A stretch of DNA of 63,059 bases, counting the filler, from Perkinsus chesapeaki ATCC PRA-425 (lineage: Eukaryota > Protista > Perkinsozoa), in assembly GCA_013115145.1 (NCBI GenBank). It is 6 parts of 6 records of this genome, joined end to end, with 100 filler letters (N's around TTAATTAATTAA, not from the genome) between each part and the next. Parts side by side here need not be neighbours in the genome. Positions count along the whole stretch, not along the records: positions 47,547 to 58,361 come from JAAPAO010000874.1; 5 more parts are not named here. The stretch is one strand, 5' to 3'. The translations under genes were made by a program, and so were the position numbers. Of the stretch, positions 47,547-58,361 are shown piece after piece. Within the stretch, counting starts at the first letter, position 1, and each line of letters opens with the position of its first letter. The notes below the pieces were generated by a model that had not been told where the DNA came from, ran no database searches, and saw nothing but the letters and a program-made list of their open reading frames with translations.

Positions 47547-48672
47547 GGGTGTAACAGTGTCCTCGCGGCAACCGTATTCGTGCCAACCCTCCTCCCAGTC
47601 CCCCGCATCTACGGTTTTAATAGGAGTGTCATGAGTCATGACTCATAAGTAGTGCTACATCATATCACATCAGAGCCACTGAGCAGGCAAGAAAACCGAG
47701 CGGCCTATGTGCTATCTGCTTTCATGCTCCACGTGGGCCATGCTCTATTTCGACCAGCTTTCTAAAGCAGCGGTGATCCTTTCCGCCTCGGCCATAGTTC
47801 TTCACCGGCTGCAAAACCCTTAACACCCCCCTCGATTATTCTTATAGTTGGGCGAGCTGTTTTTATGGGTTTGGTTCCTCCATGTGTTGTGTATTCCACG
47901 CGCCACTGGGACACTGTGAAAGTGTGGGAGGCCCCAGAACTCAGCATTGTTGGGTCAGCAACCTAGACTATCTAGCACTCAATAATATTTTGCACTAAAT
48001 AACGCTCCCTTAGGGTTCCTGATCTAGCTACTCGGAAATTACTGTGGGCCGTCTTATTCGGACAAAACGTTGTTTCACTCGGGCTGCAGGGTGGAGCAGC
48101 TCCATACAGCAGGCACTTCTAGCAAGTCAGAGTCATTCTGACTGGGAAAAAGTGGCTTGTTAACTAAAGACTTGACTGGAGTGCATCCCGACCAGAATCT
48201 GGGCTACAGATGAAGGGCTCAAAACCGAATCGTCTTGAAGTGAGATTCATATCTGTCAGAACCGGCTTAAAACATCCCAGAATACTTCAGCAACAGCGTC
48301 ATTGCCATTTATACGGTGATGCTACACATCGCGTTTTCCAGCCTCCAAAGATGTTTCGGCCGTATAATAGCGGATTCATGCATGACCGAATGGTGCCCAG
48401 GGCTACATGTTCGCATGATTCCCACGTGGCTAGAGGATGTGCTTCTCCGAACTCAATGTAACACAAGCAAATCGTGTATAGTGAGCAGGAAATATTTGCC
48501 AGCAGAAATGAATGCGTCACTGCGACGGCTGACGAGACTCCTGCATAGACTGTAGATAACCTTGGAGTTAAACTCTTTCATATCCGACTTAGTCAAGTCC
48601 ACTAGCATAAAAATTCATGAGGGACACGGCTGAGGCTGAGCTATGCTTCCCCACCACCAAGTGATATCCCAA

Positions 48673-49118
48673 TCACGGAATCAAGTGAAGCTGTACAGTC
48701 GGACCTCCTGCTCCCCTCATGTAATAAGTCTTACACTTGCTTCCTTGATACATATTTAGGTAGCTACCAGTGGCCATATTGCCATATCGCAGCAGTTTCG
48801 AGAAACAGTGCTCGTCGAGGTCAATGCAGTTATTACATGAGTATTGAGTCGAGTAGAAACTAAACTCACAATCTCGAGTCGAGACTCTCGACAAGTGAGT
48901 GACACTCCATTAACCTGGGTAAAAGTGAGGTCCGGAGTGAAGTAGTCGTCATCCTGATATTTTACAGCCGCTGTTTAATCGATTTCATACAAGGACCCAT
49001 TGTAGCCGCCATCACGATACACGCAGTCGCAACCTGCCAGATAACTGGCCTCAAGCAATGCAGTAGTAACCCGAGTAAACAGCCAAAGGGGCGACTTGAT
49101 ATTTTCGACAGCAGCCAT
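48673..49118 (-). pseudogene. Pseudogene paralogue of the secreted Cys-rich protein at 57802-58236
   Basis: MAAVENIK..LAGCDC..EID*TAAVKYQDDDYFTPDLTFTQVNGVSLTCR[+14 bp]DCEFSF..CNNC..LLRYGN..SY..MY..CKTYYM..PTVQL. It has one premature stop (48975-48977) and a 14-bp frameshifting insertion. Confidence 0.75.
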
Positions 49119-50159
49119 TGTGATTCTAGTAAAGGAAATAAGGAGCGTAGAATAACCCTGAAATAGTGCATTAATCATGATTGGTGTTGCCAGTGCCATC
49201 GTTGCATCCTCACCGGAAGGACCTTCCGTGACGTAAGAGCCCTTGCATATGCAAAAGAAACTGGTGACCTGTGCGAGATCATTTCGGCGACTGCAGCTCC
49301 CGATTTGTGTAACTCGCAGTTGCTGCCTTCAATTTTGTGACTTTTGCATTAATATGCGCCACCCTGTTGAGCTGGAGGAGCTGAGCGTTAGTCCATTTCG
49401 CAATTAATTCAGCCAAGCCTGTAGCTATTGAGCTAGTCACCCGAGGGTGAGTCGGAGAATTGTTATACAGCTATGTAGATACTTACACCTTGCTCTTACC
49501 ATGAAGTGTTATACGAAAGTCTCTTTCATGAAATCCAAGTGGACTGGTAATATGCTAATAGTGCTGTCTCCCTCCATGCACCACGTGTATCATATACCAA
49601 ATTGCCCGCCTCTGCTACTGGCGATAACCTCCTGAGATTCATTTTGATTTTTTTGCACATCCCTCATTCTTGAACGTATAATAATTGTTCAGCCTTGATT
49701 ATAACTCTATACAAGACTAAGTACTGGGAGGATTCTGTTCCTCCATGTGTCCTATGCGTCACGCGTCACTGTGGGCCACAGCCTGTGGCGGCGGTCCCAA
49801 CCTCAGGAGCGTAGTCGACCAACAACCAATCAAACCGATTTACACTGCTGGGTTAGGAGTCCTAACCTTCGCATTGAATTTCGGAAGATACGTGACACAG
49901 ATAAACGATCACATTTTTGCACTACACCTTTTTAACATCAAGTTCGCACTTAGGAACATCAATTTCGTCTCAACGGGCGAATTTGAGCGCACGAATCTGA
50001 AACGGGAAGATTCACTTCGCCGTTAGGATTTTCAATTTCGCCATAGTTTTGCTTTGTTCTATGGGCTTGCCCTCTAAGACAAACAATAAAGATAAAGCCT
50101 TGCGCCAGTCCGATAAGGACTATAGACTAACTAATAAGACTAAGGGGATAGCTGCTGCT

Positions 50160-52017
50160 ATGACTCTTCCTGGCCTGCCGTCGGGGCGCCAAGCTAAAAG
50201 TTCCGCGAAAATCGGTATGAATTCTCCGGCACAGCCCGTGCGATTACCAGGTCCAGCAAAGGACCATCAACCCAAGAGTTCCGCGAAAATTGGTAAGAAA
50301 TCACCTGTGAACATTCCTTTAGTTAGGGACCCTTGCTTCTCTGATATAAACGTCCAGTGCGACTTATATCCAGATATCTGCGAGCGTCACTGGGATAAGC
50401 TACAGTCGACTGTAGTGGCCAACGAGGGAAAGGACAACTGGGCTGATTACAGCCCAGATCATGAGGATGTGTCTATGGGACAGTTGGAGTCTGATCTTTT
50501 AGATCTTCACTCCCCCTCCCCTAGGCCCCCCTCCCCTGTGTCCTCGGTAGCTATGCCTATCTTCCCCCCTTCGCCTCCCCGCCGGACGAATCGTATTCCT
50601 ACCGCTCGTCCCTCTGGTCCTGGCGAATCGGGTGTCAATAAGCTATGTTCCGCTGGCGTCTCTAATGGTGGAGCGTCAGTCTGTGGCCAGCAGGTTGCGA
50701 CAGGTGCGGCTAATGCCAACCCTGCTCCAGCGTTGTGCCAGATCATTGCGCTTTTGCGTACCCTGATCAGTACTCTCCCTTTGGGTCCTCAAGCCCCGAT
50801 TATCTCGGCTCTTTTGGACTCCATTGTGGAGCTTGTACAGGCCATCCTGGGCAGTAGTTCGGTTGAAGCCAAACCTGTGGGTCCTACCCCAACCTTGCCT
50901 ATACCACGACGTACGGTGACTCCTAACCCGAGTGCTCCTAAGCGTCAGGCCCAGACTGCGCGTTCCAAGGCCGGACCTGCCCCTGTGCAACCGCGCCTGG
51001 CCAATCCGGCCCCTGTGAGACGTCAGAGCCCGGCCCCTGTCGGCAATGATGGGTTTACGGTGGTCACTAGACGCCGTGCGCCTAAGTCCTACGCAGCTGC
51101 GGTCAGCGGTAACGCTGGCCCGGCTCGCGGCGGACAAGGGCCACGCGTCCAGCAGACGCCGAACCCATTTGCGTCGGCAGCGAAGAAGGCGGCTACCAGC
51201 GGTAGCAGACCTGTTGTCATCGTCAGACCGACGGCACAGGCCCCTGCGCTCACTGAGCAAGGCACAATTCTCTGCCTTGCGTGTAGCTGCCCTTCAGGCC
51301 TTGCCCAAGGACATCGTCGTAACCGGCGTGTTTCCTGTAGGGCAAGTGGGTCTCGGCCTAAGCATCCGTGATGCTGCGGCCGTCCCTCGGGCAATCAGTT
51401 GTATCGGCGCCAATTTGGCTGGATACAACTGCAGTAAAAAGCAGACGCGTGCCCCGCGCATTATATGCTTCGGGGCCGCTGTCTCAAGGGATATTTCGAC
51501 CGCGGCACTTGAAAAAGTGATCCGCGAGGAGAATGACTCCCTTTTCGCGGGAAAGGTGGTCCCCAGTGGAATCGTACAGTCGATCCACTGGCGCGGACCG
51601 AACCTTGTGCTTGCGGCCTCACCAGAGTTTTACAGTGCTCTGGTGGCATCCACGGGTCACAAGATCAAGATGAACCATCTGAGTACCAGATGGTCTCTTG
51701 CTCGTGACTCCACGGTATGTTACTACTGTTCCAGGCTAGGACATATTGGTCCTAACTGCCCTGAGAAGAACAGTGGTAAGGCTTGCACCTGCACTAGGTG
51801 TGCTGGCTCTCATGAGAGGCAGCAATGCACAGCTGGCGGCGAGCGCTGCCGTAATTGTCTGGATTATAACCAGACGCAGGCTCGCCTTGGTAGGCCGGGT
51901 CGCCGACAAGCCAATCATCAGGCTACGTCGGTCGACTGCCCCAGTGCCTTAGCCTTCTGCCGCCGCTTGGCGGAGAGAACGGACTTCGGTGCCGCGTTGG
52001 CTCCTAGCTCTAACTAG
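50160..52017 (+). CDS. LINE ORF1 (Pro-rich N-terminus, three Cys/His knuckles), split by a frameshift near 51250
   Basis: CYYCSRLGHIGPNC, CTRCAGSHERQQC, CRNC...H...DCP. The frame switches between QAPA(L) and LSKAQFSAL. Confidence 0.85.
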
Positions 52018-52018
52018 A

Positions 52019-55000
52019 ATGTTGGAGTTAGCGCAGCTCAACCTGGGGAAACGGCAAGTAGCTAGTAGTCTGGTTGGTACTTTTGGAGTTGATGTGGTAC
52101 TTTGTCAAGAAGTACCGAAGTACTTTACGTAAAGTTTACGCCACCCACATCCTTTTCCTTCCATGGTCGGAAAGGGTGTGGGGTTGGCATTTTGCTTAGG
52201 AACGGCATTGAAGGCACGACGATGATGGCGAGCGAAGACTTCTGTCTCGTAAGGACCCATCTAGGTACCTTCGCTTCACTATACGCCCATCCCAACGATG
52301 AGGCTCGGCGAGAGAAGGCCTTTCAAGATTTGGAAGACGCCTTCGGCATCGCCGGCCGATTCATTTCAGGTGCTGACTGCAATGGCTACTCTGCGCTACG
52401 GGGCTCCCCACTTCCTACTACGAGCGCCCACGATGCCCAGTGGAAGATTGGCGATGACTTCCTTGCCACCTGTCTGCGTGGACATGGGACGGTCTTAAAT
52501 AGGCCTGACCTGTTCCCAGACCCGACCTTTGTCGGTGGCCAAGGAAGCTCTCACATTGACGTCACTGTGGCTATTGGCCGTGTGCCACCACACGAGTGGA
52601 GACTCTCTGATGAGTTCTCAGGTAGCGACCATAAACTTTTGCGGCTTACCATTCAGGATAAACAGCCTACTGCACCAAAGCGACTACAACTTCGACTCAC
52701 CAACCACGAGAAGGTTGGTGAAGTCGCTGCGTCTATCCCGGACCACTCCTCTGCTGTGGAAATCGCCGCTACATTATCGGAGGCTGTAGCGGCCAACACC
52801 CCTCTTATGGAGGGACGTGATTCCCCTTCGTGGTGGAGTCAGAAGCTGACGAAGCTGAAGCAAGGACTCAACAAAGCGCAGAAGAAACTCCAAGCAGCCA
52901 AGAGGAACGGCGCCGTGCTACAGATAGAGCACTGGCAAGAAGAACTCCTGGAGAGAAGAAGAGTCTACCGGATTGAAGTCCGCGCAGCGAAGAAAAGGGC
53001 CCGGGATCGCTTTTATGCATCCCTTAAGGACTTTTCGAGCTGCATCCGTGGCCCTAAGAGTAAGTCTTCTGCTGCTGTTCTTAACGGCAGGCCAGACTCC
53101 AACCAAGCGGAGTACCTACTGCAACAGCTGTTTCCTCGAGATGATGACCGGCAACGAGGCCTGGACCGAGCTGGCATGAAGCCGATCCAGCCAGAGTGGG
53201 TGTATGCGGTTACGGGAGATGAAGTTCTGCAAGCGATCGGAAAATTGAAGATCTCGGCTCCCGGCAGCGATGGCGTCAATGGGGAAGTCTTGAAGAAGAC
53301 GGCGCCACTACTAGCGGCTAAATGGGCCGAAGCCTTCACTGAGATCCTCCGGAGTGGAGAATATCCCGCGGAGTGGAAAGACGGTAAATGCATAGCTTTG
53401 TCTAAACCAGGTCGCGACATCTTCACGGCATCTGGTTGGCGCCCTGTGGTATTACTTCGATGTGCAAGCAAGCTTCTCGAGTCCGTCATAGCTGAAAGGC
53501 TCATTCACAGCCTTGGCGAGAAGTTTCGAGTGCCTGAGATCCATGGCTTCTGTCGAGGACGCAGCTGCGACACGGCACTGGCAAGGATAGTTGAGGCTTA
53601 TAAGGATGGAACGAGCAAAAAAGGCCACCATACCCTATTGCTTACGCTGGACGAGAGCAATGCTTTCAACAGCGTTAAGCATTCCTTTCTCGTTTCAGAA
53701 TTGTACCGTTTAGGCGTGCCACCATATCTGGTGCGCACTCTCAGGTCCTGGCTCACAGGCCAACAGGTACATCTGGACTTTGGAGCCGACTCTGCAGCCA
53801 TCACCTTGGAGCGAGGAGTCCCGCAGGGGTCCATTCTCGGACCCTTGCTCTACTCGATCTCGACTCTCTCTCTGGCGTCCCTGCTTCGACCGATCGATGA
53901 TCTGGTCAGCACCTTCTACGCGGACGACAAGACCCTGGTCCTGTGTACCAAAGGAAAGAAGGACTTCCTGATGAAGTGGAACCGCATTGAAGACCTTATT
54001 ACGCTATGGGGGAAGGCCTCTGGTCTGACCCTCTCGCCTAGTAAGTGTTCCTATATGTGTCGTTCCAAGCTACAGGTCCCAGCACTATTTATTGACGGAG
54101 GAGCCATTCCGAGGACGAAGGTGGTGAAGATACTGGGCCTTTTCGTCGACCAGCGCCTGACCTTCGCGACCCACATCAGGAAGAGATGTGTGGAAGCACG
54201 GAAACGGATTGGAGTGCTCCATGCACTTGGTTGGGAACGGGCTGGCTTGGACCATCGTCGGGTTATCCGTACATGGCACCAAGCAGTCCTACCCTTCCTT
54301 GCGCATGCGGCCTCCATTTGGGCACCAGTCCTCTCGGACTCGCCCAACCTTAGTAAGATTCTTGACAGTGTCTCTGGCTTCGTTGCTAGAGTCGCTATCC
54401 GAGCGCCAAGATCGGCCTCCACGGCTGCGGTCACGATGATGGCTGGCATCACACCTGCTAGCATAATGGTCCAAACCCTTGGAGCAAGAAGATCGGCTGC
54501 CATCGGTGACAATGAGGCTTTGAAGAAGGCTCCCGGCATCGGTCCCATTGAGGGCGGTTGGCTGGTCGAGCAGAGGACGCCTCATCCCCTTCCTCCTTGG
54601 CTACCTCCCCTTCCCACGACTATCCGTCCGAGGAAGGAGGCCTTAAAGGAAGCGGTGGAGTATACGGCACCGGCCATCTTCACAGACGGCTCGAAGTATG
54701 AAGATGGCGCCGGCGGCGCTTTTATAGCGATTATTGATCGCTCTGCTATCGAGAAACAGTCGTTCCGACTGCCTCGATATGCAACCATTCACCAATGTGA
54801 ACTGGAGGCGATTTGCCGCGCTCTGAGATGGATTGCCTTCTCAGAGCACAAATGTAAGCAATGGCGTGTCTTTACCGATTCTCAGGCTGCGATCTTAACG
54901 ATCAAGAATCGAGTAACGGCCGAGCGTTCTGGCATCGCCCAAGATATCGCTCGTCTCTCCCTTCTGGTTCGTGCGGACATCCACTGGTGTCCAGGCCACG

Positions 55001-55545
55001 AGGGAGTAAGATGGAACGAAGAAGTGGATGTGCTGGCCAACATCGGGCGAAGATCCTTCTTCCCCTTGGACCGCCAGCCTGCTCCACATGTCTCCACTGC
55101 GCTCGTGAAGAAGAAGGCTAAGGAAGCCATTCTGGAGTCGACCCGCCAGTGGTGGACCGACAAGAGGCGTACCCTAGGAACGGCCGTTAAGGACTTCCTA
55201 TGGGGTTATAGCCATGCCAAGCGCTACCTGAAGGCTGGTAAGTCTTCGCCAGAATTGGCGGCTATCATTACAGGTCATGCCCCGACTCCTCACCACCGAC
55301 ATGTAATGGGTACCAGAGCCGATCCTTCCTGCCCCTGCGGCTGGGCAGATGGAGACATCAAGCATCTACTTCGAGACTGTCCTTTGTTGGACGGGGCCCG
55401 ACGCGACTCGAAGCTTTCTCGAGTCATGCCGAAGGCTAATTATAAGATGATCCTCGATCGTCGGTATCGCCCGTCTCTGCTGAAGATGGCGAAGCTGACT
55501 TTCGAGTGGCTGAAGAACCTCCGAGAAGCGGAGGCTCAGCCTTAA
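52019..55545 (+). CDS. LINE ORF2: AP endonuclease, reverse transcriptase, RNase H, C-terminal CCHC; frameshifted by an 11-bp insertion at 52130-52140
   Basis: MLELAQLNLG..LCQEVP (ATG at 52019), GADCNG, SHIDVT, GSDH; GWRPVVLL, GVPQGSILGP, FYADD, KILG; FTDGSK..CELEAI..FTDSQA..HWCPGH..NEEVDVLA; CPCG..HLLRDC. Confidence 0.95.
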
Positions 55546-57013
55546 CTAGTGCTGACTGCGGCATCGGCGCATTTTTGCTGGTGTTCGCCTTTTTGATATT
55601 TTAGGACATTTTGTTTCTTGTCCTGCCCATGAGTACTCTGGCGTCCAACGCCGATTCCTAGAGAGTAAAGTCCGAGGTCGGCCATTCGATGAAGGAAGGT
55701 TAGGAAAGGAGAAGGTGGAAGGGTAAGCCGTCTGATAGTTGCTCGCTGGTGTGGATGGTCAGGTCTCTCCAACTCCCGAAGTCCGGAGGCGTCTTGCTCT
55801 TGCGGCCGCTGACCACAAGTTTTTGGTGAAAGCTATGGGCCGGACCATGCTAGGGCGCGGCAAGCTACCCCTAGGCCACCGCAGACTTTACCCTCCGGGA
55901 TGTCTCTTTCAAGTCGGGTGGTGGGCCTCGTGCCCCTTGGTCTTGTGGTATGGTATCCGGTAATGTCACTTGGTCTCCTGCGATCTCTATTGTCGCAATT
56001 GGCCCGCCTCTGGATCTTGCCTACGCCAGAGGTCTGTGGTCAGTGCCTTGAGCACGGTGCAAGTTGCGACTATAGAACTCAAGTCCCAAGCGCCAGAAAA
56101 GAAATGAAAAGAGAGCTTTGCTCCATCCTCCGCTGGTCTAAAGGACCAGGGAGGACCTAGGGACAGCTACTCTGACGCATGCCAGTCAGACCTCTCAAAT
56201 GGGTCTGGCCCTTCTGTTGCTCCCCTCCGGGATGTCTTCTGAGCACAGTTGGTGGGAATCTCGTTTGTCTTGAGTCCCCTGGCACCTGAGCAAGCAATGA
56301 CCAGTGACAAGTCTACCGGTACCTACCCTGGCACTCTACCATATGCTGGATCCTGTTCTTGTTGGTTAAGCCTCGAGAGAAGAACCTGAAGGACGGAGGG
56401 AGTTGCCTCAAGACTCAGCCTGAAGCATCGGCAGCGACTTGAAGATGGCGAGCCTGCCAGGCTCAGCCTGGAAGCTGGATCTGGACCGAAGCCTTCTGGA
56501 TTCTTGGACGACTCAGGACTGAATCAAAGGGATGAAGCTGCGGCCAAGGAGGAAGAGTGGCCGTAATTAATTTGACCGAGTTCGCAGTATAAGACATGTC
56601 ATGATGATTTGTTGTATTGCATGACTCGGTGTATCATGTTATTATGATAATTGTACTCTTTCAAAAATTTCGCCATAGGATTCTCAGGTTCGACAAGAAG
56701 TTAGTACAGTCAAGTTCACTCGACTAGGACAATCAATTTCGCCGTTAGGATCTTGAAGCGTTCTCAGGGTTCGGAGCTTGTCGTTGAACTCTTGGACCAG
56801 CGAATCCGGATTAGGCTGAATCGTGAGCTGGTCTCGGTCTCTGACTACCCCTTGCATTCGAGTTAACCTAAACTGACTCTAAGTCAAGTGGTATTCCTAC
56901 TGTATACTGAAGAAATAAGTGTTAAACAAGATATTTCATCAAAAGAGTTCACCATTTGAGCGTTCACTATCTGCCGTATTGATCGGAAAGATATCCTAAA
57001 TAACTCTCCGAGG

Positions 57014-57757
57014 TGCAGGACACTAGCGCATCCTTGTCGCTGTACCAATCCTCTTTAGCACACAATGGGTCTGTCCCGATGGGAGAAGATAGGAGCTAAG
57101 CTAAGACTATGAAGATGATGCAGCTCTATCGAGTAATTACTGGCTCATTAATAGGCATTCCTTCCCTATTTCATCCAGTGTAGTGTTGTCTCAATTATCA
57201 AATCACTAGCATGGTGCACCGTCCGGGAAAGACGAACGCATGGTGATTTGCTGCCCGAGTAGCACGATGCATTGATGGTTAATTCTTAGGGTTGCCTAGA
57301 CTGAGGTGATCTCAGTAGAAGTCATGGGCTTTCAAAGGGTTCGCTGAAACCCGAAGATATCATCTCGTGATGAGAGCTTATTGTACGCGAGAGGCGTATG
57401 ATACAGCTTGTTCTACGCGAGAGGCGTATGGCATTGATCACTCTACACGTGAGGTGTACGGTGGGTTTCGATGCGATGAGTGCATCTCTGTATCTATTTG
57501 AAATGCAAGTCGAACTACTCTATTCCTGTGCTACTGATGATTCGTGCAGCTGGGGGGCATGCAGGACGCTAGCGCATCCTTGTCGCTGTACCAATCCTCT
57601 GTAGCACACAATAGGTCTGTCCCGATGGGAGAAGATAGGAGCTAAGCTAAGACTATGAAGATGATGCAGCTCTATCGAGTAATTACTGGCTCATTAATAG
57701 GCATTCCTTCCCTATTTCATCCACTGTAGTGTTGTCTCAATTAGCAAATCACTAGCA
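57014..57757 (+). mobile_element. Miniature non-autonomous LTR retroelement (TRIM-like): 198-bp LTRs, PBS, PPT, 4-bp TSD
   Basis: LTR1 57014-57211 and LTR2 57560-57757 (TGC...GCA, 5 mismatches by eye). PBS TGGTGCACCGTCCGGGAA at 57212-57229. G-run at 57552-57557 just before LTR2. GAGG duplicated at 57010-57013 and 57758-57761. The 348-bp interior is non-coding. Confidence 0.92.
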
Positions 57758-57801
57758 GAGGTCAGGTCCAGGACCGATCACAGAATTACGGCAAGCTAGA
57801 G

Positions 57802-58236
57802 CTAATCATAGATCTTTATAAGCTCTACGTCAGGGCTCTTCTGGCTTGTCAGGTAATATAATGTGCAGTTATCTGGCATATACAGACCAATGTAGTTGGA
57901 GGAACCTATGTTACCATACTCCACCAATTCCTCAAGATCGTTGGTAGACTCCCCACAGCCGCGGCAATGGAACCGTCCATTCAAATATGCAAATTCGCAA
58001 CCCAGGCAACTGAATGGCACGCCATTCTTCGTGAAGGTGAGGTCTGCGTTGAAAAATTCATCTCCTGCGTAGTCGATCATCACACGGTAAGTGATCCCGT
58101 CGCGGGAACGCTCATAAGTACCAATATCAAAAGTACAATCATTGTCACAGCCCATAAGGTGGAAGACCATTAGCCACATAGTAGCCAGCATAATAGCCAG
58201 CACGCGCACCGATTCAGTACTGCAGCCGATAGCCAT
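57802..58236 (-). CDS. Small, probably secreted Cys-containing protein of unknown function (144 aa)
   Basis: Open frame MAIGCSTESVRVLAIMLATMWLMVFHLMGCDNDC...SPDVELIKIYD* with a hydrophobic leader. A homologous pseudogene lies at 48673-49118. Confidence 0.7.
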   Translation of the reverse strand: MAIGCSTESVRVLAIMLATMWLMVFHLMGCDNDCTFDIGTYERSRDGITYRVMIDYAGDEFFNADLTFTKNGVPFSCLGCEFAYLNGRFHCRGCGESTNDLEELVEYGNIGSSNYIGLYMPDNCTLYYLTSQKSPDVELIKIYD

Positions 58237-58361
58237 TGAAGTGTAGTTTAATAATAGACGGGAGTAAATGAATAGGCCTGGAATAGAATAGCTCGTTAAC
58301 AATGTCCTCATACGGGCGCACAAAAACAGGTAGTTAGTGCTTGAAGTCCCTGTCACCTAGG

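Follow-up and report, generated by a model that had tools for sequence, protein, structure and literature searches.

A Putative TRIM-Type Miniature LTR Retrotransposon of Perkinsus chesapeaki, a Parasite of Clams

Genomic Context of the Element

The window analyzed here is a stretch of 63,059 nucleotides in which six pieces of the Perkinsus chesapeaki ATCC PRA-425 assembly (GCA_013115145.1) are joined end to end, and all coordinates below refer to it. Positions 47,547–58,361 correspond to the 10,815-bp contig JAAPAO010000874.1. This contig carries an apparently intact non-LTR (LINE) retrotransposon on the plus strand (50049–55545), a 744-nt element bounded by two long direct repeats, and, immediately beyond it, a small gene on the minus strand (P0006, 57802–58236).

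The first open reading frame of the LINE consists of two overlapping frames (50049–51371 and 51046–52017), with a weak match to a CCHC zinc knuckle that falls below the Pfam cut-off. The second (ORF2, 52102–55545) is uninterrupted and encodes 1147 aa, in which domains for endonuclease, reverse transcriptase, and RNase H are recognized. With 100% identity it matches the P. chesapeaki protein FOL47_010807, annotated at NCBI as a single hypothetical protein of 1770 aa, and the closest relative found beyond this entry is a P. olseni protein with 35% identity. Together with the TRIM-type element described below, there are thus two retroelement classes on one contig.

The gene P0006 is real and codes for a protein of 144 aa that has conserved cysteines and is hydrophobic at its N-terminus. 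Secretion is plausible; no Pfam family was matched. Its paralogues FOL47_006364 and FOL47_006365 (65 and 63% identity, MAFFT) are arranged in tandem on another P. chesapeaki contig, and the family is small and was seen only in this species. In the partial paralogue, conservation reaches into the sequence upstream of the P0006 ATG, suggesting that flanking DNA was copied along with the gene in a recent duplication. Judged from these protein matches, that is, the identity with FOL47_010807 and the P0006 paralogues in P. chesapeaki, the DNA of the contig is that of the parasite (Alveolata, Perkinsozoa) and derives neither from its clam host nor from a contaminant. The stop codon of P0006 lies at 57802–57804, which leaves, as the initial annotation had it, a gap of 44 nt to the second repeat. 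The element is oriented toward the 3′ end of this gene, which faces the 3′ LTR, and may be located in or beside its 3′ UTR.

Structure and Borders of the Element

A repeat search, a MAFFT alignment including 10-nt flanks, and BLASTN all delimit the same two direct repeats of 198 nt, at 57014–57211 (5′ LTR) and 57560–57757 (3′ LTR), both on the plus strand. They are 97.5% identical, with five mismatches (two transitions and three transversions), a degree of likeness over such a length that is beyond chance. Likeness begins precisely at TG on the left and breaks off precisely at CA on the right, giving termini of the form TGCAGG...CTAGCA. [quoted passage not shown] A 5-bp TSD does not fit the flanks of this pair of LTRs.

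The whole element measures 744 nt, of which the interior makes up 348 nt. Abutting the first LTR on its 3′ side is an 18-nt primer-binding site (PBS), TGGTGCACCGTCCGGGAA (57212–57229), and abutting the second LTR on its 5′ side is the polypurine-tract-like (PPT) sequence CTGGGGGGCA (57550–57559), which was recognized by sequence reading and alignment. The PPT is short, being a run of six G (57552–57557) that ends 2 nt before the LTR, with CA placed between the two. When the element is read on the minus strand, the LTR is followed by TGCCCC, which lacks TGG and matches no tRNA, and this orientation has been rejected. Overall, the anatomy is that of an integrase-mediated LTR insertion. The initial annotation had listed two 198-bp TG...CA LTRs with five differences (about 97.5% identity), a GAGG TSD, a PBS next to the first LTR, a G-rich PPT, and a total of 744 bp with a 348-bp non-coding interior, and each of these has been recovered here as measured.

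On the 10,815-bp contig there is no second copy, fragment, or solo LTR of the element, either when it is searched by BLASTN against the contig or when the contig is compared with itself. The exact 22-mer spanning the LTR–PBS junction gave no match in metagenome contigs, and the 18-nt PBS gave none in viral contigs; Perkinsus non-coding DNA is expected neither in these collections nor in the protein collections searched with frames of the element, and blanks of this kind have no bearing on copy number. A 56-aa frame within the LTR, compared with 1.84 billion representative proteins, yielded 68 weak matches (29–48% identity). Every one of them aligned in multiple stretches with a long repeat protein, and of three that were scanned with Pfam, two are LRR proteins of the BspA type. 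We have rejected them as repeat-pattern noise that does not represent copies of the element. We infer that the element belongs to a family extending beyond this one copy.

Primer-Binding Site and Its tRNA

The reverse complement of the PBS is TTCCCGGACGGTGCA-CCA, i.e., the form of a tRNA 3′ end (tRNA positions 59–76). Complementarity extends over 18 of 18 positions (the CCA and the 15 terminal nucleotides before it) and is lost at base 19, which stands opposite A58. In retroviral replication plus-strand strong-stop synthesis stops opposite A58, a length of 18 nt being canonical for the PBS. A match of 18/18 to a tRNA 3′ end located right at the LTR border has a negligible probability of arising by chance.

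We have scanned metagenomes with a pattern for the T-arm and acceptor stem (GTTCGANTCCCGGACGGTGCA), obtaining 77 loci, on which ARAGORN was run. Among the predicted tRNAs ending in ...TCCCGGACGGTGCA, 27 were tRNA-Gly (anticodons GCC or CCC) versus only two tRNA-Ile(GAT). The glycine set includes a 71-nt tRNA-Gly(GCC) of eukaryotic type, predicted as six genes in estuarine or marine contigs. The designation of the PBS as tRNA-Gly type, already proposed in the initial annotation, is thus supported, since among environmental tRNAs the matching 3′ end is nearly confined to tRNA-Gly and the site has the canonical extent of 18 nt.

At about 50 of the 77 loci the tRNA 3′-end pattern was located within tRNA-derived SINE-like repeats of host-associated metagenomes and not in tRNA genes. 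This repeat is present in many contigs of the metagenomes Ga0209781 and Ga0209364 (e.g., L005:1368-1470), has the same GTTCGACTCCCGGACGGTGCA at its end, after which comes a conserved TTGCCGGGTAGCCTAGGTCAACTCA tail, and is not called as a tRNA by ARAGORN; it is unrelated to the Perkinsus element. On the side of the element, the PBS is followed at 57230–57239 by AGACGAACGC, in which CGAAC fits the complement of the tRNA T-loop (GTTCG) if two extra bases are allowed. Either chance or a PBS that continues in degenerate form could account for this match.

A Predicted Tandem Hairpin Array in the Interior

A duplicated 17-mer, TACGCGAGAGGCGTATG, had been noticed previously in the interior. The duplication is real and forms part of a larger tandem array with a period of 30 and 2.5 to 3 copies: Tandem Repeats Finder reports 2.5 copies of period 30, and three tandem 30-nt units can be delimited at 57375–57464 (plus strand), around 150–250 nt downstream of the PBS. 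Each unit is predicted to fold as a hairpin whose loop comprises five bases, GAGAG in two of the units and GUGAG in the other. When the three units are aligned, a helix of nine pairs is obtained in which 27 of 27 cells are paired, and at four of the nine pairs both sides have changed (U-A to C-G, A-U to G-C, C-G to U-A, and G-C to A-U). Controls in which the 3′ partner was slid were only 15–62% paired, and 7 of 500 shuffles attained the observed values. The predicted fold has a z-score of −2.8 for the 101-nt array and −2.9 for the whole interior. These values are suggestive of a hairpin structure that was kept after the duplication of the units, as judged from three paralogous units within a single element.

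Among retroviral packaging signals, HIV-1 psi contains stem-loops with GGAG and GGUG loops that are bound by nucleocapsid zinc knuckles. The Perkinsus array is similar in that several short stem-loops, their purine loops rich in G, are grouped between the PBS and the expected start of gag, a likeness that is one of form only. Because of this location downstream of the PBS and of the purine-rich, G-containing loops that recall retroviral packaging stem-loops, we propose the array as a candidate cis signal for packaging in trans, which gives a concrete sequence to consider in this role.

Nature of the Element and Alternative Explanations

Altogether, we consider, with a probability of roughly 0.85, that the nuclear genome of P. 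chesapeaki harbours here a complete miniature LTR retrotransposon of the TRIM type, which is non-autonomous. The initial annotation had described it as TRIM-like, and this description holds: the size, LTR length, TG...CA ends, TSD, PBS, PPT, and lack of coding capacity are all present in the one copy. The longest open frame of the interior measures 76 aa, and a search of 5.8 billion clustered proteins yielded no homologue for it. A LARD, which is also a non-coding LTR element but of several kilobases, is ruled out by the total length of 744 bp.

The main rival reading is that a full-length autonomous LTR retrotransposon lost its gag-pol region by deletion in place, in which case the 744 bp would be a one-off remnant and there would be no miniature family. 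A single copy is known, and the structure of one copy fits both histories. Nevertheless, no trace of gag or pol appears in any frame, Pfam giving no family above its cut-off for the four frames of the element that were scanned. A deletion would also have had to leave both the PBS and the PPT intact and abutting the LTRs, and to leave between them an interior with a structured tandem hairpin array and compensatory changes, in an element whose total size is well within the TRIM range (PMC10886601). We regard such a remnant as unlikely.

Considerably less probable is a specialized small LTR element with an unusual mode of RNA production. This would be either a retrozyme, which has hammerhead ribozymes in its LTRs and forms circular RNA, or a TRIM of the pol-III-driven group (Cassandra, Helenus, or Ajax), whose LTRs include a pol III promoter within sequence derived from 5S rRNA or tRNA. 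The size and the 4-bp TSD are indeed like those of retrozymes (PMC4918200) and of the animal Helenus (PMC10886601). However, the RNA searches provide nothing of what these elements carry: Rfam at gathering thresholds gave no match in the whole contig, Rfam with E-values up to 10 on both strands of 56800–58000 returned nothing beyond noise, so no match to a hammerhead, a tRNA, 5S, or any other small RNA, and ARAGORN detected no tRNA-like sequence in the element. Given that neither program reveals a hammerhead, tRNA-like, or 5S-like motif, the element is a plain TRIM and neither a retrozyme nor of the pol-III type.

Finally, that the two 198-nt repeats are merely LTR-like and were produced by segmental duplication at this site or by faulty assembly is hardly credible, in spite of the fragmented assembly (a 10.8-kb contig), for it leaves unexplained the TG...CA ends, the 4-bp flanking duplication, the 18-nt tRNA-complementary site starting with TGG right at the repeat border, and the G-run just before the second repeat, while the five differences between the repeats speak against duplication by the assembler.

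Proposed Mobilization and Relative Age of the Insertion

The TRIM-type element would depend on an autonomous partner. It would be transcribed by RNA polymerase II from the 5′ LTR to the 3′ LTR, and its RNA would be packaged in trans by the Gag that an autonomous LTR element in this genome supplies. The three tandem hairpins with purine loops that follow the PBS may serve in this packaging. Reverse transcription would likewise be provided in trans by an autonomous Perkinsus LTR element, the 3′ 18 nt of tRNA-Gly annealing to the PBS to prime minus-strand DNA, and the G6 tract priming the plus strand. The integrase of the partner would then join the TG...CA ends over a 4-bp staggered cut, leaving the GAGG duplication. 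Candidate autonomous partners exist in the genus: the annotation of P. marinus contains more than 350 "retrovirus polyprotein" entries with reverse transcriptase, RNase H, and integrase, together with matching ESTs (PMC2868825).

The five differences in 198 nt correspond to a Jukes-Cantor corrected divergence of 0.0257. Since the LTRs have diverged by 2.5% from the time of insertion, the insertion is fairly young and not brand new, in terms of relative age only.

This picture implies that a tRNA-Gly-primed LTR retrotransposon making a 4-bp cut has been active fairly recently in a lineage of commercially important clam and oyster parasites. A bolder reading, less likely than not, is that the element represents the first TRIM family of alveolates and that the three covarying G(A/U)GAG-loop hairpins act as a cis signal hijacking the Gag of a tRNA-Gly-primed autonomous Perkinsus LTR element. 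If this were true, a natural cassette of 744 bp would show the minimum that retrotransposition in Perkinsus requires in cis. There is also the possibility of an exchange of the family with the bivalve hosts, themselves carriers of TRIMs. On the practical side, small elements adjoining genes can mislead both gene prediction and assembly in fragmented Perkinsus genomes.

Comparison with Known Miniature LTR Elements

TRIMs are defined as non-coding elements smaller than 1000 bp that have two LTRs and an interior bounded by a PBS and a PPT, and they are on record from plants, green algae, hymenopterans, taeniid cestodes, and bivalves, the pol-III variants having been found in fungi too (PMC10886601). 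The Perkinsus element resembles them in its length below 1000 bp, LTRs within the 100–350 bp range, TG...CA ends, PBS, PPT, TSD, and non-coding interior. Its host, in contrast, is an alveolate protist of the Perkinsozoa, a group absent from the distribution given in PMC10886601, and in the literature that we searched TRIMs are not described from Perkinsus or any other alveolate, nor did it yield anything specific on Perkinsus LTR elements or protist TRIMs. Also unlike known TRIMs, its interior bears three covarying tandem hairpins, and no sequence relative was found.

With retrozymes, which are non-autonomous LTR elements of plants, it shares the small size, the lack of coding sequence, the PBS, the PPT, and the 4-bp TSD, but differs from them in that Rfam detects no hammerhead motif, whether inside or outside the LTRs. 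Cassandra, Helenus, and Ajax (TRIMp3) have the same TRIM architecture, whereas the LTRs of the Perkinsus element contain no 5S- or tRNA-derived sequence, and its relation to tRNA is only the ordinary complementarity of a PBS.

The 4-bp TSD is like that of the animal Helenus (PMC10886601) and of PbTRIM from ants, which has 4-bp TSDs and a tRNA-Leu PBS, while in plant TRIMs the TSDs measure 5 bp and the PBS is that for tRNA-Met (PMC3532108); the PBS of the Perkinsus element departs from both in matching tRNA-Gly. In summary, all the structural features that define a TRIM are found in this element, which is of an ordinary kind in a host group without prior report, and this example from the Perkinsozoa extends the range of TRIMs to the alveolates.
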